The notes below the pieces were generated by a model, which was not told the DNA's origin, did not search any database, and saw nothing but the letters and a program-made list of their open reading frames with translations. 64,000 nucleotides of DNA from Guillardia theta CCMP2712 (taxonomy: Eukaryota > Protista > Cryptophyta): assembly GCF_000315625.1 (NCBI RefSeq), contig NW_005434616.1, forward strand, positions 186,001-250,000. The letters are read 5' to 3'. Below, piece by piece: positions 2,088 through 52,022 of the stretch; the first letter of the stretch is position 1; each line of letters opens with the position of its first letter. The position numbers were made by a program, and so were the translations under genes.

Positions 2088-5000
2088 TCACGTCTTCTCC
2101 TCTCCTCCGCTCCTTGTCTTCCTCCTCACCAACACCTGCTTCGGAAACGACCTCCCCAGCCAGAAGATCCGATCTCTCAACCCCTGAGCCTTCTTAATGA
2201 CAGACAGCGTGCTCCTCTCAGTCTTCTTCTTCCTCCTCCTCCTCTCCTCCTTCAGATTCTTCGCAACCTTTTCGTCCTCCTCCGCAAGAGCAGGAGTACG
2301 AACGGTCCTGCCGTCGCTGCTCCAGTAGCTTGCGGGGATGCTTCTCTTCGCCATGGCAACCGCCGCCTCAACGTCCTCCCAGCGCGAGTGGCTCCTCATG
2401 TACTCCCTAGCCAGCAGAGGGCCCAGCTTCCTCCACTCCATCCTCCCGCCAGCCTGTGACAGCGCAGAGTCGACTGCATGCACCCAACCCCTCCAGCCTG
2501 CCTTGGCTGCCTTCACCGCGCTCCAAACCTCCCCCGCCTGCTCCTCCGACACCCTGAGCTCCTTCCTAACGTAGTGGACGAACCGGAGGCGTCTCACGGG
2601 GACGAACTCGTGCTGCAGCAGCTGCTTCAGCAGCCCCTTCGTCTCGTCGCTATGAGAGTTCCTGATCGCCTTCCATAGCACGTCCTGCCAGGCCGCCTTG
2701 TCTACCAGCACGTCGTGCGCCTCGCACCACTCCAGCCACTGCTGCCACATGGCGTCATGGCGGAGGGTGTGGGACGAGCCGAAGACGATTAGTCCACGTC
2801 TCGCTCGCGTCAACATCACGTTGAGCCTCCGCCAGTCGCGCAGGAAGCCGACCATGCCCCGCTGGTTGCTCCTCACGGCCGAGAAGAGGATCAGCTCTTT
2901 CTCCCTCCCCTGGAAGTTGTCGACGCTCGCTATCTCCAGCTCCCTCGCCTCCGCCTGGTCCAGATTCTCCCGCGCGCACAGGCTGTGCCAGCTCCTCTTG
3001 AGCAGGCGGACCTGAGCCATGTAGGGGGTGACCACCCCGACGTCCCGCGGCCGCAGGTTCTTCTTCCTCAACACCATGATCAGCACTTGCAGCAGCTTTT
3101 CCACCTCCTTGGGGTTCGCCTTCGACTCTCCCTGCTGCTGCTCGTGGTATCCTCTTCCCATGTCCACAAACGCCACGGGCACGTCCCTCCTCGGCCACAC
3201 GAACCCCTGCAGCGCCGGCCGCTCCTCCCCCCTGATCCCGTCCTTGAGCCTCCCGTCGTAGACCATCTTGGAGGAGAATTCCATGAGCTTCGGGTGCGAC
3301 CTGAACTGAGTGTCGAGGAACTTCGCCTCCAGCCCCTCCCTCACCAGCCGAGCGTACAGGGAGACCGACATTCCTCGCTCCTCCGCCTCCTCGCTCTGCA
3401 CTGTTGGAGGGAGCTGGCAGTGGTCCCCAGACAGGACGAGGCGGCTGCATCCCCTCTGGACGATGGGGACGATGGTGTTGATCTCAGTGCACTGGGCGAC
3501 CTCGTCGACGAGGATTGCGTCGAAGCTGCCGAGCTGACGGAAGAGGAAGTCTCCTCCTGCAGTGATCATCTGAGCACAGATCACCTCGGCGTTGTCGAGG
3601 ATCTCGTCTCGGATGAAGTTATCTTGGTCTCTCTCCTGCCTCTCCTTGCGCTTCTGCCGCTCTGCCGGGTCCAGCTCCAAGTCCATCCAGATGTTCACCT
3701 TCTCTTCATCCTCGCTGTCAGACATTGGTTTGCTCTCCATCCATTGGTCCCTTTTCATGTCCAACAGACATGGAATGCAGTCCTCCTTGGTCGGCTTGTA
3801 GTCCACGAACCCCCCAGTGTCCGCCTCCTCCACATTTTCCCTTCGTATCCTCCAGCCACGGGCCGGGGGAAGTTGCGAGTCTTGCGGGCAGTATGCCAGG
3901 ATGCCAGACTTACCCTTCTTGTTGGTGATGTACCAACCCGACTTGTCCTTCCTTTCCATGTAGAAGCAGTAGAGTGGTGACTTCTTCACTCCGTCGAGCT
4001 TCTTGTACGAGTGGTAGGGAGATTTCATCAAGAACTCCCGCTCCACCTCGTACGCCCGTGCCCAGACCCCGTTGAGCTCGGGCATCAGAGTACCGTTCTC
4101 GTAGACCTTCCTGGCTAGCAGCCCTGACATCCGAAACCAGGCTTCCTTGTCATACTGCATGTTCACAACTTGCGCCTCCGTCATCGCCTGGAGCTCTTTC
4201 TCGTACTGACTCACGTATTCCTCCATCTTCCTATCGATGCCCAACTTCTTCTCCTCCCGCCTTCTCTCTTTGTCCTCCTTCCACTTCTTTACCTGATGGT
4301 CTAGCGTCAGCTCCTCCACCAGCGAGCTGATCTTCTCAGGCCTCCCTATCCTGACCACCTTCACTCCCGCTCGGGCCAGCCCCTGCGCGATGTTGTCCAC
4401 CGCCACGTTCCCATCAGCTGTTGCTAGGATCTTCCCGACGCCCACCTGGGCCCATAGCTTCAATATCTCGACGGACGTACTAGTCTTTCCCGTCCCTGGG
4501 GGGCCCTGGATGATGGTACATCTCTGCCAGAGAGCCGCCCTCACGGCCTCGCGCTGGGAGGGCGTCAAACGCTCGTTGTGCTCCAGCTCGTTGCTCGCCT
4601 TGCAGAGATTTTCCCAAATCATGGGAGGCCTCCAGGGCTCCTCCGCAATCTGCTTCACCCGGTTCCTTGCCCTCTCCTCCTCCTTCTTCCTCTCCTCCTC
4701 CTTTCTTCGTTCCTCCGCTTTTCTTCTCTCCCCCTCCCTCCTCTCCTCCTCCTTCTTCCTCTCCTCCGCTTTTCTTCTCTCCTCCTCCTCCTTCCTCTCC
4801 TCCTCCTTCCTCCTCTCCTCCGCTTTTCTTCTCTCCTCCTCCTCCTTCCTCTCCTCCTCCTTCCTCCTCTCCTCCGCTTTTCTTCTCTCCTCTTCCTCCT
4901 TCCTCTCCTCCTCCTTTCTTCTCTCCTCCACTCCAAGTTTCTCCTCTACCTGAACCAGATCCTGCTCCTGCTTTATTCCTTCTCTGCCCACATCTTCCTT

Positions 5001-8000
5001 TTCCTGCATCTGCGTCTCCACAATCGCAACTTCCTCCCTATTCCCTTCCTCCTTCCCTTCCACGTCCGCCATCACCACCATGTCTCCTGCTTCATTCTGC
5101 ACCACATCCTCCGCCGCCTCCAACTTCGTCTCTACTCCTCCTGCTCCTTCCTCCTTGTCGCCCGTGGCCCCACAACCTCCCCCTGAGCACAATCACCCCG
5201 TTCAGAACCTCTCAGCAACACAGAAGCAACAATCTCACCTGCAGCAATCCAGCCTCCTCCCTCGCTCTGTGGCTCAACGTCGTCCATTGCCGTCGGCACT
5301 CCGGCGCTCTCCCCCTCTATCTCCTCTTGGTCGTCCGAGATGTAGATCACTTCAACCTCTTCTCGTCTCACCTGCTCCTTTGCTGTCTCACCTCCTCCAC
5401 CCATCTTGGCCTCCGACCCCTCAGGCTCTACCTCCATCGCATCCTCGCTCATCCCTCCCTTGCCTTGACCGTCCATTGTATCTTCCTTGACGACCAGGTC
5501 CGGGTCCGGCCCCTTCCCTTGCTCCGTCCTCGACTCAAGATCCTGACTCGGCAGGCAGTACTGACCCGCCGTCGATCCTTCTTGCGAGTCTTCCGCAAAG
5601 TCCATGGTCGTCACGTCATCCACCTCCTTCCCCGTTCCAGCGACGTCCTGCACGGGTGCTGTGGAACTTGACGCCTCGAGCCTGCCTCCCACCTCCTCCA
5701 CGTTCACTTCCCCCGCCGCCAACACTTGTGGCCTCTCATCACAGCTCTCACAGCTGATGGCATCTTTCATCATCTCCGCATCCTCCCCCACGGTACAAGA
5801 GGCCTCGGCTCCCTCCTTCCCCTCCCCCTCCCCCTTCCCTTCCGCTCCTTGCTGCTTCTTCCTCCTACTGATCCACTCGTCCACCATCCCCACCTGACTC
5901 TCCGTGATGATCTCGAAGATCTTCTCTTCGTCCTGGCCCCTCACCTCCGTGCAGATCGTCTCTAGCGACTGCAGCTGGCGGCTATAGCTCGTTCTGTTCG
6001 CCGACTTGTCGACTCTCCACGTCTTCTCCATGTAGTCCTTGGGCAGTTTGACAACCTCATCAAGGTTGATCGTCATTGACGTCTCCGTCAACTCCCCGCA
6101 AACTCCGATGCCCAGCTTGTCCACCAGCGGGCTCGTCAGGCTGATCGCAACCCCGTCTCCCTTCTTGATCTTCAGCTTGAACAGGTCGATGGCGCTGCTG
6201 CTCTTCAGCCAGATCTTGTTCGCGTGCGTCTTGTCCTCCCAGCCCCTGTGCCTCCTCCCGCACGCCACCTTGCTCACACTTAGCTTCGTCAGGGCCCAGC
6301 CCGACCTCTGCAGGGCCTCTGCTGTCCGCCCGCAAACCCGATTGCGCATCAGCTCGAGGTCAGCTAGGAACTCTAGATGGATCAGGACGTTGAAGTGCTC
6401 GAAGTAGCGCAGCTTCTTCTCGTCTCCGTGGACGACCCCTCCCCTCAGCTGTTCTACGTCAAGTTGCCCCACCAGCTCGTTCACAGGTGGAGCTGAGAGC
6501 TCCTCGTACTCCTGCCTCCCCACCAGCTTCACAGGATCTGGGCAGCGCTTCTTCCCCTCGTTGATCTGCCAGCCAGCCCGAGGGGGTAATGAGGAAGTGG
6601 AAGGGTTGAAACCGATGGTAGCAGCTTTGCTCCCAAATTTTGTGCCAAGCCACCATCCTTTCTTCATCTTGCTGAAGTTCCAGTAGTAACATACCAGTTC
6701 CTGCTCCGTGTCTCCTCCCTTCTTCTCTGCCTTGCTCTGCTTCTCCTTTTCCCCACTCCCGACGCTTGCGTCTTCCTTGGTTGTGTCTTGTACTCTCCCC
6801 TCTTCTCTCCCCTCCTCTTGGGGAGCTTTGACGTATACAGGCCTCTTGTCATCCATGAAAGCATCGTATTTGTCAACTTGCAGGTATCTTCCGTTGACCT
6901 CCTCCCTAGCCTTGCAACCAAAGAAGAAAATTTCCTCGGGGATCGTCTTCGCTTCCTCCTCTCCTTTCGCTTCCTCCTCTTCTTCATCCTCCTTGTGCTC
7001 GGAGTTTTCGATCTCCATGCTCGGCTTGCTCAGCCCCTGCAGCTCCGCCTCCAGGTCCTTCAAGCTCGATCCTTTCTTCATGGGGCTAACACAAGGAGCA
7101 TCGGGAGGGAGCGCGAGGTTGAGGAGGATGCGGATCAAGGCAGGATGCACGGAGAGGTCCGAAGTCACTCTCATCATCACTTCACGGTACGAGCCGATGC
7201 TCAGCCTCAATCTGCTCCCTCCTCCTCCTCCTCCTCCTCCTCCTCCTCGCTTCTCCCTTTCCTCGGTAACTTGAATTGTCTGTCCTGCCTCTTCATTTGA
7301 TCGAAAGATCTTCAGAGCTTGAATAAGAGATCGGAGGCTAACTTTGCAGGACACCACCAGCAGATCAACTATCAAATATTCCTTGACTGCAATCCCATGA
7401 AGCCTTGCTTCCTGGATCTCGTTCACAGCTCCGCTGATGTCCCTCTTGACCAGAAGGCGTTCGATTCTCTCCGAAACTTTCTTTTCACGCTCCATCCGCT
7501 CCTCCTCCAGCCGCTGCTTCTCTCTCCTCTCCTGCTCCTTCTTATCCATCTCCTCTCGCCGCTGTTTCCACTGGCGCCTCTCCTCGTCCAACCTCCTCAT
7601 CCGCTCCTGCCTGTCCTCGTCTGTCTCTCTCTGTTGCATGTCATTCCAGCGGACTTGACTTCGGTCGTCGCTCCTGCTCGGGGCATATCTCGGGTAATTT
7701 CTCTCCTCCGCCCTCCACTCCTCGACTCTTCTCCCTCCCACCTCCCCGGCTCTCTGCTCTCGTCGCCTGTCGGCTCCGTCATGCCTCCTTGACGGCTCGT
7801 CCAGCTGCGGCTGAGGGGATGGAGCATAGAAGGACGACCAAGGAGAGGAGGCGCTCGACTTATGCCGTTTGTGCTCTTGTGCTTGCCTTGCGGTATCCAC
7901 ACGAGCAAAGTCTCCTCCGTTCAGCGACCCTCCCTGCCACCCTTCTCGTATCTCACCATTGGGCCGATCGGTGGTGGAGGAGGCAGGTGGATCGCCGCGA

Positions 8001-23219: not shown

Positions 23220-23840
23220 CCCTATTGATTTTTAACAAGTTAAGTTAAGGCATTGTGCGGCGCTCAGCGGCCGCAGTGGCCCACCTCCGCTGGATCGGAT
23301 GCCGCGGATCACAGTGACTGAAAGTTGAAAACTAGCGGCAGTGAACCACTATCGGTTCGTGGCACATGCAGCAAGGAGAAGGACAGACCACCTGAGCAGT
23401 TATCGATCATGAGGCATGGGGAGCCACCAGGGGTGGTGAGGCTCCTGACCGTACGCACGAGTGAGTATGCCTTGTGCGTCCGCTTAGATCGTACACAACA
23501 GGGGACATTTATGCAAGGTACGGGTGGTATCTCCTGTACTGTGGCTGAACCTCGATGAGGAGCAGGCAGCAGATCTAAGCGGACGCACGAGGGATGCTCA
23601 CTCGTGCGTGAGGAGCCTCACCACCCCTGGTGATTCCCCCTGGCTATCATAAAGGGATCTTCAACAACCGCTGAGGTGGTCTGTCCTTCTCCTTGCTGTG
23701 TGTGCCACGAACCGATAGAGTGTCTGTGTTACTTCTCAAATAAACATCTTCATACCTCTATGTCTCGTCACCTTTGTGTGTGATCCAGCGGAGGTGCCTT
23801 TAGCATTAGCTGTAGACGTTTGCAACTCGTGATCATAGGG
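23220..23840. repeat. Imperfect long inverted repeat (fold-back) formed by two copies of element B
   Basis: Paired blocks: 23282-23296 with 23782-23796 (15/15), 23349-23397 with 23670-23718, and 23426-23490 with 23572-23631. Confidence 0.9.
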
Positions 23841-42709: not shown

Positions 42710-44179
42710 TCCGAAGCCCATGCGGCATAATGGTTGTCAAGTTCGGAGTCAGTGCTTCCGCAGTTCCGAACGGTTCAGTGAACTTGGAAAGCCCGGCGGG
42801 CCCGGCCCCGGGTCCGGCTGCAGCCCCGGGAGCCCGGGGGGCCCGGGCCCGCGAGCGACCATCCGACTCGTGATGATCGGACACCGTTGAAGGTGATAGA
42901 GAAAAATCGTCTGGCATTGCCGGGCGGCGCCCCGGCGGTGACCGGTACGGCCCGGTTTGCCACCGTGGCACGCCAACTTGATCAGAGTCATCAGTTCATG
43001 TAGTTCAAGTTTATTGCAAGTTACTGGGTAAGGATGGTTGATCTAAGGCCGTGTACTAGTACCTACCGTTAGGATAGCACAGCCGCTGGGACTGTGCCAT
43101 GATCTTCGGACTCAGCCCTGACACTTGAATGATTTCCGTCACTGGAGTCGGAGCCGCCTCCCGCCGCCGGGCCCTCCGGCGAGCCTGTCAGCCGACTCTG
43201 ATCTGTTGAACTTCGGAAACGCATATCTGCCAGGCTGACAACATCAGCATTTGACACTCCCCGAATCAGGAATGCGACGCTGAGACCCGCATGGTCGTCA
43301 TCAGTAAGTTGATAATGTGGCGTTGAATGTTCATTCTGATCACAGTGACTCATTCAATTGCTTCTTGCATAGACAACTGGCAAAGTCTCAGAGCATAATG
43401 ATGCGCCACCGGGTGCGGCGGGAATCATGGTATGATGAAGTATGCCTCGCAGGCGTAATAAAACAGATGGTAATCATTCAAATCCTAAAATGTCCGATAA
43501 TCATGACGATCGAGATGGTAATAATGCCGCTCAAAACTCAGGCTGAAGGAAATGTTGAAGAATATTTGCGCGTTTTGACGGTCAAATGCGGACTAAGGGA
43601 ACTTGTCAAACAGGATTTCATGAATATCATTCCTGTTATAGATAGATGGTTCTTGAACACACCAGCCAGGTATCAAGCAGAGGAAGTCTGCGTGTGAGCC
43701 ATTTTCTTATCCGGTCTCGCATGAATGCAACGACAAAGATCAACTGACAAAAAATTCCCAATATCGTCTATATGTTTTTCACAGAAACAAACCTGGTATG
43801 TTATCATACCAGCTTCGGAGAGTAACACTCAAACGATTGTGTATAAAACATGGCGAGTAGGTGTTATCAGGACTACACGCATTTTCTTTGACGCTCCTGT
43901 GTAGTGTGGAGCGCTGCAGAACTCTCGGGCAATTGAAGGCGACGATGCCACCGAGATTGAGTGAAGTTTCCTGGCAATAGAAGTGAGCACAGGATTCGCA
44001 GTGATGCCTGCCGTAGTGGTGTGGATAATGTTTACACAGTAGAAGAAGGCTGAAGAAGGAGTTGGTTGCTGACGATCATCGAACTGATTACCAGTGAAAT
44101 TGGAACCTACATTGAAAAGGAAACATGATTGCCTGCTTCCGCGGAAGCAGTATCTTCTTCTTCTTGTCATCAATATAAC

Positions 44180-44491
44180 CTACCCACCAAATCCATAAAG
44201 TGTCCTTCCTCGCCTCTTCAACGCGTACACCACGTCCATCGCTGTGACAGTATCTCTTCTTGCATGCTTTGCGTAGATCATCGCATCCCGGATCATAATC
44301 TCCAGGAATTCCCTAAGCACAGTCCTAATCTCCTGATAGATCAAGCTGGAGATTCGCTTCACGCCTCCTCTCCTGGCGAGCCTTCTGATGGCAGGCTTTG
44401 TGATTCCTTGCATGTTGTCGCGCAGAACCTTGCTGTGTCGCTTGGCTATTCCCTTGCCCAGTCCCTTACAGCCTCTTCCGCTCCCCGTCAT
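44180..44491 (-). CDS. H4: Histone H4, divergent variant, intronless
   Basis: Full-length 103 aa, aligns without gaps to canonical H4 with 22 substitutions. Confidence 0.95.
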
Positions 44492-44824
44492 GTGTTGATG
44501 AACGTGTATGATGAGGAACCTCTTTGTACCTGGCTTTGTAGCACCCGCGCACCGTACCCCACCCCTCGGGGGTGTAATGCAGGAAAATAAATCATTGAAT
44601 CATTCAAGTAGTACATTGGTCGATTCTTGTGTCAATAGTGTCCAAATTGTCTCTTTTGTTTCTTTTGAACCACTTCCCTCTGCGCGGCCCGAGGTAGGAA
44701 GTAAAGGGGTGGGGTTACAACTACCCCCACCCCTATCATCAAGTGTTACACAGAGAATCACCTGGAAAATAGGGGTAGGACAGGCGCATGGTAGGTAACC
44801 TCAACCCACAAGTCCTGATAGCGA

Positions 44825-45125
44825 ATGGCAGTAGGGGAAGGCCCCTCGAATGGGAAATCGCTGAGCAAGGAGCATCGAGAGGTACAGGCGCGGAGAAGTT
44901 CATGTGCAGGAGATCTCTTGGCCTGATATTCGAAGGCTCACCGAGAGGGGAGGCGTGGAGAGTAACCCCAGCTCGATTTGCAATCATAAGATTTCTTTTT
45001 AGAAGTTTCGTTAGCAGTATGATCCGCCACGGGGTGACATTCATGGAGCATGAAAGGAAAAATTCAATGAAAGCAATGGACGTGCTGTGTGCAAAGGGTA
45101 GAGATATGAAGATGTTGATTTGATA
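44825..45125 (+). pseudogene. Frameshifted histone H4 pseudogene, head-to-head with the variant
   Basis: Three successive frames: GKSLSKEHREV (cf. GKGLGK..RHRKV), HVQEISWPDIRRLTERGGV (cf. [19 protein letters not shown]), RSFVSSMIRHGVTFMEHERKNSMKAMDV (cf. [28 protein letters not shown]). Confidence 0.85.
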
Positions 45126-45334
45126 ACGCCAACACACTATCGATTCGTGGCACACACAGCAAGGAGAAGGACAGACCACCTGAGCAATTGTTTACGATCC
45201 TTTTATAGTCGAGGGTGAGGAACGACCAGGGGTGGTGAGGCTCCTTACGCACGAGTGAGCATCCCTCGTGCGTCCGCTTAGATCTGCTGCCTGCTCCTCA
45301 TCGAGGTTCAGCCACAGTACAGGAGATACCACCC
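45099..45334 (+). repeat. Element B, third copy (candidate structured non-coding element)
   Basis: Reverse complement of 23522-23760; 45225-45334 matches 109/110 and 45137-45185 matches 47/49. Confidence 0.93.
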
Positions 45335-45383
45335 TTACTTTGGAAACTCTGTCGCCCAACAGGGGTTGTACCCCAGAGGTGTG

Positions 45384-45932
45384 TCAGTAGCCGTTAGAGC
45401 CCTTGCTGTCCTCGTGGCTGTAAGAGAAGACCATAGATTCTCTTGCTGCCCACTCCTGCTCCATAATATTCTTCCTGCATGAAGCTTCAGCGAAGGCAGA
45501 GCTCTGGTACGCTCCAGCTGCTGCCTCCTTGGGCTTGGCACGATCATCGTCAAACCGATTGTCCGTCATCAAGTCCGGCTTCGTTTTGTTAGCAGTCACT
45601 GAGTCACAGTGGTGCTGCAGTAATGAACTCGGAAGGGAACAGCAAGAATATAAAGGTTTCATCACTTTGCGTCTGTAAAAATTCAACTCGATAGGTAGTG
45701 TCTCAACTGGCTTTGAAAGCGACAGACGTCGAACGTCTTTATCTGACAGCTTTCTGCTTCCAAGCCATTCCTTGCCGATTATCACCCAGCGATTCCAGCG
45801 GACTCCCCGGATGGTATCTTGAAGGCTGTCAAATGAACGGAGGCTCAGCAACGCCCAGTGTGATGATTCTCTGCTGATTCTCTGTAATACTGCAGCCTCT
45901 GAGGGGGGCCCGAAGTTTGGACAACCCTCCAT
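45384..45932 (-). CDS. 182-aa ORF, weak J-domain-like resemblance; possibly a pseudogene
   Basis: ATG-initiated; SHWALLSL, VRRLSLS, KPD..DDRAK..EAA..AYQ; no HPD motif. Confidence 0.3.
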   Translation of the reverse strand: MEGCPNFGPPSEAAVLQRISRESSHWALLSLRSFDSLQDTIRGVRWNRWVIIGKEWLGSRKLSDKDVRRLSLSKPVETLPIELNFYRRKVMKPLYSCCSLPSSLLQHHCDSVTANKTKPDLMTDNRFDDDRAKPKEAAAGAYQSSAFAEASCRKNIMEQEWAARESMVFSYSHEDSKGSNGY

Positions 45933-47054
45933 GTCTCTAAGCAGATGCTAACCCCTCATCCCCTCCCTGGCACCCACAACCCCACCCTGTCATCCTCAAG
46001 GTCACCCCTTATCGTCTGCGCAAATGGTGCAACCACCCAGGAGAGAGAAAGGACGGGTCCTGCCCTGATCTTGCGACCTTCGGAGTACCCCACCTATCAC
46101 AAGTGATGACTTCTGACACACACCCCGGTACTTTGATCGACTACCTCATCCACCCAACCAGCCGTACGGTCTCGGGGTCCATGCTGTGTAAATACGCCGA
46201 TCCTGTGGGAGGTGATGTAGGTCGGGAAAATCACCTAAAGAGACACTTAAAAGAATTGCAGACTATAGACACCGTAAAACAACAAGACCGTTTAGCAGTG
46301 AGTTCGTACGGTGCCAGGGTGCTCATCTCGCTTCCGACAATCACCACCCCTGTCTTCTCCTGGGCTGATTCTCGAGCTTGTTTCAAGTACCCCTCCTGAT
46401 CCGATATGCTGGCACCCACCGCACGCACTTCAATAGACCCCTCTATGACCCCTAGGTTGGCAGTTACACTTGAGCCACGATGGATTTATGACCCCCCAAC
46501 TGTTTACCACCCACGTTGACCCACCCCTAAGATTCGCTCAACTTTTGTCAACTTGGCCTGGATGTCCTCCCTTTCTTCTTTCCTACAAACGCTCCATAGT
46601 TTCTAGCAGCAGCCTGACCCTTGCCTTCTGTTCTCAGTCACAACGAGGTAGGCAGGTAAGAAATATATGGTAGGTCGTCCCGAGCAGAAATGGATTGGGG
46701 GGTGGGATGGAAAGATGAAAGGGGGTATGCCTGCAAATGAACAAATCTGGTAGGAGGAAGCAAAGAGGGGGTAGGGTAGGTAGCAGCGAGGGAGGGCCAT
46801 GAGGCAATGAGAAATGGGAAAATAAGGGGTAGACGATGGGCAGAGGAAGGCAAGTGAGGAACAAGAAGCCATACTAGTAACCCTAACTGAATTCTTGGGC
46901 GAGCCATAAGGAAAACCAAACAGGTGGACCTATACCAAGAGCAGACACGCAAGAGAAAAATAGACTATAGAAACGAGGGTAGGGTATTGAGAGGTTCCTT
47001 AAAAGTCCCGTGACTGGTTTTACCGTTACGCGTAGTCCCTGCCTCGCCACCGCC

Positions 47055-48376
47055 ATGAGCAGCACCACCCCCGCCCCGCAGGTGTCAACCCGCTCTGTGC
47101 GCTAGTGTTCTGCTCTTGCCGTGGTCTCTTATGCTTCATTTGCTCCTGCTTCTTATGCTGTGATGTGCTTGCCTGTGATCCCATCTTGTAAATCGTCTGG
47201 TCTGCTCTTGTGCTACGCCTCTGCCTCTGCTCCTCCTCGGCGGGGGATCCCTCGAGGAGAAGAGAAAGGATAGGTTTTTTTGCAGGGGAGGGGGCTGCGC
47301 AAGCGAGTGTAGAGGGGATGGTTGTTTCTATTAGTGCTGCACGCTGATAGGCAGCCAGAGATGTTGACAAACATGTGGTGATGGGGATAATGTAGAAGGG
47401 GCATTGGCATCTGTTTTCCGTAGACAGAGGATACTGGATCTAGCGGCTTGATTGCAATGTGCTTGTAGCTGACACCGAGACAGGTTCCCTACCCTTACCC
47501 TCCCATGATGTCCGGACTCCAGTACGCTCCCGGAACCGTGATCTCCGGAGTGCCAGGAGCTGCTCCCGTGAGCTCCTACCCCGTCATGTCCTACGGCTAC
47601 CCCGTCACCAGCGGATCTGCCGCTCCTGTTTCCTACGGCGTGCCCCAAGCAGTTGGCAGCCTCCAGCCTGTCGTCTACTCGCAGACCATCCCAGTGCCTG
47701 TCCAGACCACCCAGACCGTCATGGAGAACCAGGTGAGCTAGCGGAATGCGCATCGGTGTGAGAGTGAGAGAGGGAGCAAGAGCTTTCGTGTCAGCATGGG
47801 ATAGAAGGTGCGCGACTGACTCATGCGATCACAGACTATTATGGAGAGCAGAGAGGTTACCGTGAAGGTTCCCAAGGTCATCATGGAGGAGGTCGAGATC
47901 ACCTACCAGGTCCCAGCGATGGAGGAGCGCGTCCACACCGTGCAGCGACCCAAGACTGTCATGTGAGTATCTCATTTCTTGCTTGCACTTGCCCTTGCTT
48001 GGGCTTATCTCTTCAACTGGGAGGGTGAGGCTTGCGATATTTGACGCTGTTTCCTGTCAACAGGGAGGACAGGGAGATCACTGTCCAGGAGCCTCGCACC
48101 GTGATGGAGCCTAAGACCGTCCAGGTTCCCACCTACCAGACCGTGCAGCAGGAGGTCACCATGTCAAAAGTGCTCGAGTACAGCCGCCCCAAGCTTGTCC
48201 AGCAGCACTACATCCAGCAGTCCGTTGCTCCCTGGAGTACCGTCACCATGACTGCACCAAGCTACACTGGAGCCAACGTCTACAGCACCACCCAGCTGGC
48301 TCAGCCACAGCAGCAGCAGCAGCAGCAGCAGGGACAGCAATTTTATCAGCCATCGGATGATGCCATCTCCGCATAA
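47055..48376 (+). CDS. Articulin/epiplasmin-like V/P/E/K repeat protein, copy 1 (4 exons)
   Basis: Exons 47055-47081, 47484-47732, 47835-47962, 48064-48376; core VTVKVPKVIMEEVEITYQVP..ITVQEPRTVMEPKTVQVP; poly-Q tail. Confidence 0.78.
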
Positions 48377-48875
48377 GATGCCGGACCTTACACACGTAGT
48401 GTAGATGTTTGGGTGTTTTTTAATCGATGTTGTGTAACGATCAGTAAATCCAATCAAGCTTTGCTTCGATTTTTGATCGTTCAGGTCGGTCTTGGCACAT
48501 TTTGGGTTCAACTGTAGCAAGCTGATTGCAGTTGATAATGTTCATGCTGTTTCAGTATCTTTTTGGGGTTTGTGGTCAGATTTGGTCTTGTGTGGGTGTT
48601 GGTGATTTCTTGAGCATGGTGAATGGCAAGCAGAGCGTTGTTGGCTTTCGGAATCCGAGCAACTTGGGCTTGCATAGACGGCAGTGCATGGCCCGCGGCG
48701 TAGGCCAGTGTAATATAACCATCGATCAGGTTCGGAGGCGGGCTTGCATCGTAAGGAGCGTCGAGAACCATAGCCTTAATGGACCGGTTCATTGCAAGGG
48801 CAAATTTTGGGTAGGGGTACCAGTACTCCCGTGAGTGATGTTACCGTTACGCGTAGTCCCTGCCTCGCCACCGCC

Positions 48876-50199
48876 ATGAGCAGCACCACCCCCGCCCCGC
48901 AGGTGTCAACCCGCTCTGTGCGCTAGTGTTCTGCTCTTGCCGTGGTCTCTTATGCTTCATTTGCTCCTGCTTCTTATGCTGTGATGTGCTTGCCTGTGAT
49001 CCCATCTTGTAAATCGTCTGGTCTGCTCTTGTTTGCTACGCCTCTGCCTCTGCTCCTCCTCGGCGGGGGATCCCTCGAGGAGAAGAGAAAGGATAGGTTT
49101 TTTTGCAGGGGAGGGGGCTGCGCAAGCGAGTGTAGAGGGGATGGTTGTTTCTATTAGTGCTGCACGCTGATAGGCAGCCAGAGATGTTGACAAACATGTG
49201 GTGATGGGGATAATGTAGAAGGGGCATTGGCATCTGTTTTCCGTAGACAGAGGATACTGGATCTAGCGGCTTGATTGCAATGTGCTTGTAGCTGACACTG
49301 AGACAGGTTCCCTACCCTTATCCTCCCATGATGTCCGGACTCCAGTACGCTCCCGGAACCGTGATCTCCGGAGTGCCAGGAGCTGCTCCCGTGAGCTCCT
49401 ACCCCGTCATGTCCTACGGCTACCCCGTCACCAGCGGATCTGCCGCTCCTGTTTCCTACGGCGTGCCCCAAGCAGTTGGCAGCCTCCAGCCTGTCGTCTA
49501 CTCGCAGACCATCCCAGTGCCTGTCCAGACCACCCAGACCGTCATGGAGAACCAGGTGAGCTAGCGGAATGCGCATCGGTGTGAGAGTGAGAGAGGGAGC
49601 AAGTGCTTTCGTGTCAGCATGGGATAGAAGGTGCGCGACTGACTCATGCGATCACAGACTATTATGGAGAGCAGAGAGGTTACCGTGAAGGTTCCCAAGG
49701 TCATCATGGAGGAGGTCGAGATCACCTACCAGGTCCCAGCGATGGAGGAGCGCGTCCACACCGTGCAGCGACCCAAGACTGTCATGTGAGTATCTCATTT
49801 CTTGCTTGCACTTGCCCTTGCTTGGGCTTATCTCTTCAACTGGGAGGGTGAGGCTTGCGATATTTGACGCTGTTTCCTGTCAACAGGGAGGACAGGGAGA
49901 TCACTGTCCAGGAGCCTCGCACCGTGATGGAGCCTAAGACCGTCCAGGTTCCCACCTACCAGACCGTGCAGCAGGAGGTCACCATGTCAAAAGTGCTCGA
50001 GTACAGCCGCCCCAAGCTTGTCCAGCAGCACTACATCCAGCAGTCCGTTGCTCCCTGGAGTACCGTCACCATGACTGCACCAAGCTACACTGGAGCCAAC
50101 GTCTACAGCACCACCCAGCTGGCTCAGCCACAGCAGCAGCAGCAGCAGCAGCAGGGACAGCAATTTTATCAGCCATCGGATGATGCCATCTCCGCATAA
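48876..50199 (+). CDS. Articulin/epiplasmin-like protein, copy 2
   Basis: Same exon structure; one synonymous TAC>TAT change seen. Confidence 0.78.
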
Positions 50200-50698
50200 G
50201 ATGCCGGACCTTACACACGTAGTGTAGATGTTTGGGTGTTTTTTAATCGATGTTGTGTAACGATCAGTAAATCCAATCAAGCTTTGCTTCGATTTTTGAT
50301 CGTTCAGGTCGGTCTTGGCACATTTTGGGTTCAACTGTAGCAAGCTGATTGCAGTTGATAATGTTCATGCTGTTTCAGTATCTTTTTGGGGTTTGTGGTC
50401 AGATTTGGTCTTGTGTGGGTGTTGGTGATTTCTTGAGCATGGTGAATGGCAAGCAGAGCGTTGTTGGCTTTCGGAATCCGAGCAACTTGGGCTTGCATAG
50501 ACGGCAGTGCATGGCCCGCGGCGTAGGCCAGTGTAATATAACCATCGATCAGGTTCGGAGGCGGGCTTGCATCGTAAGGAGCGTCGAGAACCATAGCCTT
50601 AATGGACCGGTTCATTGCAAGGGCAAATTTTGGGTAGGGGTACCAGTACTCCCGTGAGTGATGTTACCGTTACACGTAGTCCCTGCCTCGCCACCGCC

Positions 50699-52022
50699 AT
50701 GAGCAGCACCACCCCCGCCCCGCAGGTGTCAACCCGCTCTGTGCGCTAGTGTTCTGCTCTTGCCGTGGTCTCTTATGCTTCATTTGCTCCTGCTTCTTAT
50801 GCTGTGATGTGCTTGCCTGTGATCCCATCTTGTAAATCGTCTGGTCTGCTCTTGTTTGCTACGCCTCTGCCTCTGCTCCTCCTCGGCGGGGGATCCCTCG
50901 AGGAGAAGAGAAAGGATAGGTTTTTTTGCAGGGGAGGGGGCTGCGCAAGCGAGTGTAGAGGGGATGGTTGTTTCTATTAGTGCTGCACGCTGATAGGCAG
51001 CCAGAGATGTTGACAAACATGTGGTGATGGGGATAATGTAGAAGGGGCATTGGCATCTGTTTTCCGTAGACAGAGGATACTGGATCTAGCGGCTTGATTG
51101 CAATGTGCTTGTAGCTGACACCGAGACAGGTTCCCTACCCTTACCCTCCCATGATGTCCGGACTCCAGTACGCTCCCGGAACCGTGATCTCCGGAGTGCC
51201 AGGAGCTGCTCCCGTGAGCTCCTACCCCGTCATGTCCTACGGCTACCCCGTCACCAGCGGATCTGCCGCTCCTGTTTCCTACGGCGTGCCCCAAGCAGTT
51301 GGCAGCCTCCAGCCTGTCGTCTACTCGCAGACCATCCCAGTGCCTGTCCAGACCACCCAGACCGTCATGGAGAACCAGGTGAGCTAGCGGAATGCGCATC
51401 GGTGTGAGAGTGAGAGAGGGAGCAAGAGCTTTCGTGTCAGCATGGGATAGAAGGTGCGCGACTGACTCATGCGATCACAGACTATTATGGAGAGCAGAGA
51501 GGTTACCGTGAAGGTTCCCAAGGTCATCATGGAGGAGGTCGAGATCACCTACCAGGTCCCAGCGATGGAGGAGCGCGTCCACACCGTGCAGCGACCCAAG
51601 ACTGTCATGTGAGTATCTCATTTCTTGCTTGCACTTGCCCTTGCTTGGGCTTATCTCTTCAGCTGGGAGGGTGAGGCTTGCGATATTTGACGCTGTTTCC
51701 TGTCAACAGGGAGGACAGGGAGATCACTGTCCAGGAGCCTCGCACCGTGATGGAGCCTAAGACCGTCCAGGTTCCCACCTACCAGACCGTGCAGCAGGAG
51801 GTCACCATGTCAAAAGTGCTCGAGTACAGCCGCCCCAAGCTTGTCCAGCAGCACTACATCCAGCAGTCCGTTGCTCCCTGGAGTACCGTCACCATGACTG
51901 CACCAAGCTACACTGGAGCCAACGTCTACAGCACCACCCAGCTGGCTCAGCCACAGCAGCAGCAGCAGCAGCAGCAGGGACAGCAATTTTATCAGCCATC
52001 GGATGATGCCATCTCCGCATAA
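50699..52022 (+). CDS. Articulin/epiplasmin-like protein, copy 3
   Basis: Same exon structure. Confidence 0.78.

Follow-up and report, generated by a model that had tools for sequence, protein, structure and literature searches.

A conserved element beside a decayed histone H4 copy in Guillardia theta is very probably part of a truncated LTR of an old Ty3/gypsy-type retrotransposon family

Introduction

Solo and fragmentary LTRs of Ty3/gypsy (Metaviridae) retrotransposons are the closest described counterparts of the element studied here. Common to both are a direct-repeat unit of ~500 nt bounded by TG...CA with short imperfect terminal inverted repeats, an internal TATA box and AATAAA, and a TGG-initiated PBS-like site a few nucleotides past the 5′ LTR. 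RT/RNase H remnants of gypsy type lying between two copies, and many isolated copies with a star-like, mostly unresolved phylogeny, complete the resemblance. The family described here differs in that no intact autonomous copy was found, that target-site duplications (TSDs) are mostly unrecognisable, and that several copies lie inside larger tandem arrays (C73, C118).

G. theta and its relatives are known to carry retrotransposons with flanking direct repeats of a few hundred bp, and a Copia retrotransposon in one G. theta PLV as well as retrotransposon-like nested insertions in cryptophyte genomes and polinton-like viruses have been described (PMC12220804). Our locus shares with these the direct repeats of a few hundred bp in the same group of organisms. 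In contrast to the Copia case, what remains of pol here belongs to the Ty3/gypsy RT-RNase H type, and the copy in the window lies outside any PLV, as far as examined.

The histone 3′ UTR stem-loop (RF00032) of histone mRNA tails offers another comparison, since here too an H4-like reading frame is followed by a hairpin. However, no Rfam match was obtained at this locus, and the hairpin belongs to a repeat that occurs at dozens of non-histone sites and is absent from the genome's real H4 genes.

The element under study, hereafter element B, occupies positions 45099-45334 of a 64,000-nucleotide stretch of G. theta DNA (the window, to which all positions refer unless a contig is named). An initial annotation had proposed that it is either an undescribed structured RNA or the terminus of a mobile unit that carries H4 copies. 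Our analysis retains the mobile-unit terminus, in the form of an LTR, and gives up both the carriage of H4 and the structured RNA: element B very probably belongs to a truncated LTR from an old Ty3/gypsy-type LTR retrotransposon family, by now degenerate, of the G. theta nuclear genome.

Results

Element B belongs to a dispersed repeat family

A family profile and a majority consensus were built from ten long copies in order to fix the boundaries of the repeat. Searching with this profile (nhmmer) placed all three copies that the initial annotation had recognised in the window, with E values of 1e-32 to 1e-119. The best match extends from 45093 to 45511 (profile 79-497, E 8.6e-119); the profile match is on the plus strand and the LTR reads on the minus strand. 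Element B sits within this copy; it had been recognised rightly as a repeat, but its annotated limits cover only part of the unit. According to the profile placement, the 45-kb copy is without the final 78 nt, so that the U5 end with its terminal ...TGTGACA is missing. The remaining two copies in the window are fragments, at 23511..23832 (profile 16-330, match on the minus strand and LTR on the plus strand, E 3.7e-85) and at 23282..23490 (profile 52-262, match on the plus strand and LTR on the minus strand, E 2.5e-32). They are inverted relative to each other and separated by a gap of 20 bp.

Alignment of the three copies (45060-45400 on the plus strand, 23460-23800 on the minus strand and 23300-23520 on the plus strand) reproduced the reported similarities. 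The 49-nt block 1 shows 2-3 differences between copies, and the 110-nt block at 45225-45334 differs from 23522-23631 at one position, with a far more diverged stretch between the blocks.

The genome search suggested by the initial annotation covered 87,145,349 bases in 669 contigs; the nuclear genome of Guillardia theta has been reported as 87.2 Mb (PMC4007541). A 198-nt core matched 44 places in this genome. With a full-length copy as query, at least 55 scored matches out of 115 first-look candidates were obtained genome-wide, the family copies being 70-88% identical. In the alignment of long copies, the unit measures ~500 nt, with sharp ends and unrelated flanks in many copies. The mean distance of the copies to the family consensus is 9%, and their tree is largely unresolved and star-like; it was made on a 146-column region, which does not resolve the relationships of the window copies. 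The distance from the consensus and the star-like tree together give what, judged from the sequences, is the picture of an old transposable element burst. An exact 32-nt word of the LTR had no match in metagenome contigs.

Parts of the family appear to have been amplified as segments of other repeats, since LTR fragments are embedded in larger repeated units. One tandem array (L037, G000:C73:286000-295999) has a period of 2.4 kb and extends to at least 302.7 kb; in each unit, the final ~170 nt of the LTR and the PBS-like site are accompanied by ~400 nt of leader and by a 33-bp minisatellite whose copy number varies. LTR fragments and internal-deletion derivatives lie inside larger repeats with 2-5-kb spacing at C118:189.6-198.7 kb (G000; L010-L012) and on C430/C19 (L047, L053). 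On a smaller scale, a 28-nt unit of the LTR (GTAGAGATATGAAGTTTATTTGATAACA, positions 45094-45121 in the window) is tandemly amplified 5-6 times in two copies, L006 (C21:~700.4-700.6 kb) and L019 (C74:~142.2-142.4 kb). The truncation point of the 45-kb copy is the exact start of this unit, a coincidence that hints at a recombination-prone spot where the LTR was truncated.

The repeat has the termini and internal signals of an LTR

The LTR strand is opposite to the strand on which element B had been described, and the unit runs 5′-TGTATCAGAGCTC...GGGGTGTGACA-3′. Most of the copies that retain their ends have TG...CA termini with short imperfect inverted ends (TGTATCAG...GGTGTGACA). A TATA box, TATAAAAG, was read at 45200..45207 on the minus strand, inside what had been described as a variable spacer; of the 22 copies compared, most retain the motif CTTTTAT..AGTCGAGG. 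About 90 nt beyond TATAAAAG on the LTR strand lies AATAAA. Both motifs stand at conserved positions in the family, and the AATAAA is mutated in the 45-kb copy. They are candidates for an internal promoter and a polyadenylation signal, and on their positions we base the presumed U3/R/U5 layout.

Outside the repeat, a PBS-like sequence, TGGTAGCGTT(A/G)AG, was found 3-6 nt past the ...TGACA end at seven independent loci (C21, C48, C51, C73, two on C146, and C151), with a one-base deviation in two copies. A leader of up to ~430 nt is common to most of these loci as well. Position and sequence of TGGTAGCGTT fit a putative primer-binding site. It is complementary to ...CGCUACCA, as in yeast initiator tRNA-Met. 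Two pattern searches for tRNA 3′ ends in the G. theta genome gave matches at control level only, and the matching tRNA was not found.

Directly upstream of the start of the 45-kb LTR, at 45512..45532, lies a stretch that is purine-rich on the minus strand. This flank of 19-21 nt reads AAGGAGGCAGCAGCTGGAG in the window and AAGAAGGCAGCAGCTGGAG in L005, the one other copy with which it is shared. It resembles a polypurine tract, suggesting that the 45-kb copy may have been a 3′ LTR. A clean TSD (GGAA/GGAA) was seen in one of the seven two-ended copies, L028, and in none of the other six. Age or recombination between elements could be the cause of this scarcity.

A degenerate element carries gypsy-type pol remnants between two LTR copies

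The locus L058 (C146:68000-77999) contains, in this order, an LTR remnant (422-567), the PBS-like site, the leader, a gag-like ORF, degenerate RT/RNase H, and another LTR remnant (5998-6244) oriented like the first. The leader carries a 78-bp tandem repeat and the gag-like ORF a CFNC zinc-knuckle remnant. In the pol ORF we found the RT motif LSKVDLASGFWQF and the start of RT_RNaseH_2 (PF17919; E 3.7e-6, below the Pfam gathering score as a single stretch); beyond a frameshift, the RNase H match goes on in a different reading frame and takes in a TDASD motif (E 0.009). On a different contig of this genome, an ORF matching the pol ORF (BLASTP, E 6e-11) carries RVT_1 (E 1.9e-17) and is adjoined by an ORF with RT_RNaseH (E 8.8e-33). 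L058 thus has, in degenerate form, two LTR copies in direct orientation on either side of a gag-pol region with RT and RNase H. No integrase was detected in this degenerate locus, and no intact full-length or autonomous element with two complete LTRs was found.

Taken together, the termini, the internal signals, the PBS-like site, the PPT-like flank, L058 and the pol homology point to a degenerate Ty3/gypsy-type LTR retrotransposon family. A better-preserved gypsy-type element with Retrotrans_gag, RVT_1 and RT_RNaseH ORFs was observed in L044 (G000:C151:66500-76499, ~4057-6925, plus strand), near a split LTR copy and in the opposite orientation to it; it is probably of a different family.

Another non-autonomous repeat class, such as a SINE, a MITE or a Helitron fragment, was weighed against the LTR and is very unlikely. 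Most copies are indeed solitary, ~500 nt long and without coding capacity, their TSDs are mostly not visible, and two window copies contain GGTTCG, which bears a loose resemblance to the B box of Pol III promoters. A SINE is nevertheless at odds with the ARAGORN result, which gave no tRNA-like head or gene at seven loci, and with the lack of an A-rich or simple-repeat tail at either end. As for a MITE, there are no terminal inverted repeats beyond TGT..ACA, and the family ends do not fit the TC...CTRR termini of a Helitron. The PBS-like site, the shared leader and the pol remnants between two copies of the same orientation fit an LTR element.

The near-identical blocks point to local duplication or gene conversion

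Rare derived characters unite the 45-kb copy and the 23.6-kb copy: each has an insertion of 3 nt, has lost ~8 nt and carries the substitutions GAGTGAG and CTCATCGAGG. The two copies are therefore sisters or gene-conversion partners, and the fragment at 23511..23832 is the sister of the 45-kb copy in its central part. The contrast between conserved blocks and a diverged spacer is limited to this pair. Because the pair shares rare indels, the near-identical blocks are best read as the outcome of a recent local duplication or patchy gene conversion, presumably not of selection on an RNA structure. It is by such exchange that we infer the sharp contrast between the identical blocks and the diverged spacer to have arisen. 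For the two adjacent 23-kb copies, gene conversion was also considered; the CA dinucleotides that they share at CpG sites could reflect parallel deamination, and we make no claim of conversion between them.

It is very unlikely that the blocks, 21.6 kb apart, are under selection as a domesticated cis-regulatory module or as a source of small RNAs. Were this the case, antisense transcripts might for example start at the LTR promoter, cross the H4 pseudogene and run towards the H4 variant described below, with a regulatory role for that variant.

RNA structure is at the level expected from shuffled sequences

The sequence does contain the complementary segments that had been pointed out, as well as the 9-bp hairpin (45247-45273). 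The hairpin is an inverted repeat, ACGCACGAG / CTCGTGCGT (45247..45273, no strand assigned), and its sequence is well kept across the family without covariation. This helix (helix 4) is 90% paired, a double change occurs in one of the nine pairs (two cells), and the other changes are one-sided or break the pair. For the 21 named pairs on 22 copies, the covariation score was 0.074 against 0.076 in shuffles, and 85.4% of cells were paired against 85.1%. Folding gave MFE z-scores of -0.96 and -0.64 on either strand relative to dinucleotide shuffles, thus within one standard deviation. Rfam yielded no match at the gathering threshold over the whole window, and noise only under relaxed settings over 44700-45500. 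The spacer, which had been thought to form a variable loop, is at the family level as conserved as the blocks and holds the TATA box.

Nor did the search for a transcript favour an RNA gene: RNA-like coverage was low and patchy, with no discrete transcript, in libraries that would miss short RNAs. RNA-like contigs over 45258-45314 had a depth of 5.7-19, and no pile-up of their starts or ends was seen over the LTR. These contigs run on into unlike sequence and hence derive from other copies of the family. The summed word depth over the element was 0-11, against ~88 over the adjacent H4 variant. Low-level RNA-like contigs that touch the region, together with the complementary segments and the well-kept hairpin, are what could be said for a gene or gene family of an undescribed structured non-coding RNA whose blocks pair around a loop and are followed by a hairpin. 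Against covariation and folding at shuffle level and a conserved, TATA-containing spacer, we consider such a gene highly improbable.

Of the copies tested, only the 45-kb copy adjoins histone H4 sequence

A decayed histone H4 copy (residues 26-90; CDS nt 79-265) lies at 44901..45093 on the plus strand (tblastn E 1.9e-6) and was confirmed by nucleotide alignments to canonical and variant H4. It is contained in a chance ORF, 44788-45123. The H4 similarity stops at 45093, which is the LTR junction (profile position 79), so that the final ten codons of the H4-like ORF are LTR sequence. The claim that the copies generally trail decayed H4 genes did not withstand a tblastn search with H4 at ~30 independent copy loci and over the whole window, in which H4 was found beside the 45-kb copy only. 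This is largely the outcome that the initial annotation had set as its refutation: the other copies have no H4 association, and the element bears the hallmarks of a transposon (LTR) end.

The diverged H4 sequence said to lie upstream of the 23-kb copies also had to be reassigned. The first 110 nt of the family, including the 78 nt past the junction in complete copies, scored no better against H4 than shuffles did, and neither the four canonical H4 genes nor the variant had flanks that matched the repeat. Since the family end has no H4 similarity and the flanks of the real H4 genes have no repeat, the sequence beside the 23-kb copies is the LTR's own U5/R terminal region and not H4. An H4 origin of the repeat end was also tried by local alignment to canonical, variant and decayed H4; a match was obtained with the decayed copy alone, owing to its final 30 nt, which are the repeat itself.

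Six H4 loci were found in the genome: four canonical genes, one intact divergent gene and one decayed copy, the latter two in the window. The decayed copy and the intact variant form an inverted, head-to-head pair, with 64% nucleotide identity over CDS nt 79-265, and both derive from the nearest canonical gene, C58:181437-181742. The remainder of the decayed H4 beyond the LTR was not found in the window or the genome. On the minus strand, 45889-45993 resembled the H4 N terminus (tblastn E 2.7); this possible relic had no nucleotide support and was treated as chance. RIP-like mutation of the H4 copies was set aside as well, the mutation spectrum being not transition-only and the organism not a fungus. 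Between the head-to-head copies, at 44705-44734, there is a 30-nt near-perfect palindrome, AGGGGTGGGG...CCCCACCCCT.

That element B is an H4 3′ UTR, a composite transposon end or another tail of a mobile unit or processed H4 transcript that scatters H4 copies is extremely improbable: at 45 kb the decayed H4 does run straight into the repeat and its frame continues to a stop inside, but among ~30 independent loci and the three window copies this one alone adjoins H4-like sequence, the genome has six H4 loci only, none of the flanks of the intact H4 genes matches the repeat, and complete copies extend 78 nt past the H4 junction with sequence that is not H4 and scores at shuffle level.

The neighbouring intact H4 variant appears to be transcribed

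The intact divergent H4 gene, 103 aa long, lies at 44180..44491 on the minus strand, head-to-head with the decayed copy. It carries 21 substitutions relative to the four canonical H4 genes; its dN/dS is ~0.25 relative to the nearest canonical copy, whereas canonical copies give 0.009 among themselves. The variant and ~420 nt downstream (43756-44389) are covered by three sets of RNA-like contigs at a depth of ~44-90, and raw RNA reads match as well. The gene therefore appears to be transcribed. No homologue closer than ~80-83% was found in a search of 5.8 billion proteins. Divergent expressed H4 variants are rare in eukaryotes. At position 44221, inside the gene, all five covering raw RNA reads have G where the assembly has A; the mismatch could be a strain difference or editing (no DNA control).

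Further observations concern the neighbourhood. The only close named homologue of a ferroportin-like ORF comes from the cryptophyte Hanusia phi (71% identity). Downstream of the locus, three segments of ~500 bp (47006-47500, 48827-49323 and 50650-51146) are 99% identical and spaced by ~1.8 kb, which suggests a young tandem repeat. Within the first of them, at 47041-47083, the RNA-like depth is very high in two runs.

Discussion

The arrangement at 45 kb can be put together as follows. The LTR runs on the minus strand from 45511 down to 45093, with TATAAAAG in its presumed U3, a downstream region corresponding to the AATAAA region of the family, and its final 78 nt lost. It abuts, in antisense orientation, a duplicate of the nearby H4 gene that has decayed and been truncated. 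That H4 and LTR lie side by side would be the result of insertion and rearrangement, not of co-mobilisation, and both 23-kb copies are further fragments of the same LTR family. The copies presumably have no present function.

A false lead, a new structured RNA or an H4-carrying mobile element, is thereby removed. The locus illustrates a trap: a solo or fragmentary LTR beside a pseudogene can mimic a conserved tail, and local gene conversion can mimic selective constraint. With the retrotransposon reading, one old Ty3/gypsy-type LTR family very probably joins the repeat inventory of a cryptophyte genome, and the divergent H4 variant that appears to be expressed beside the LTR is of greater interest than the LTR itself.
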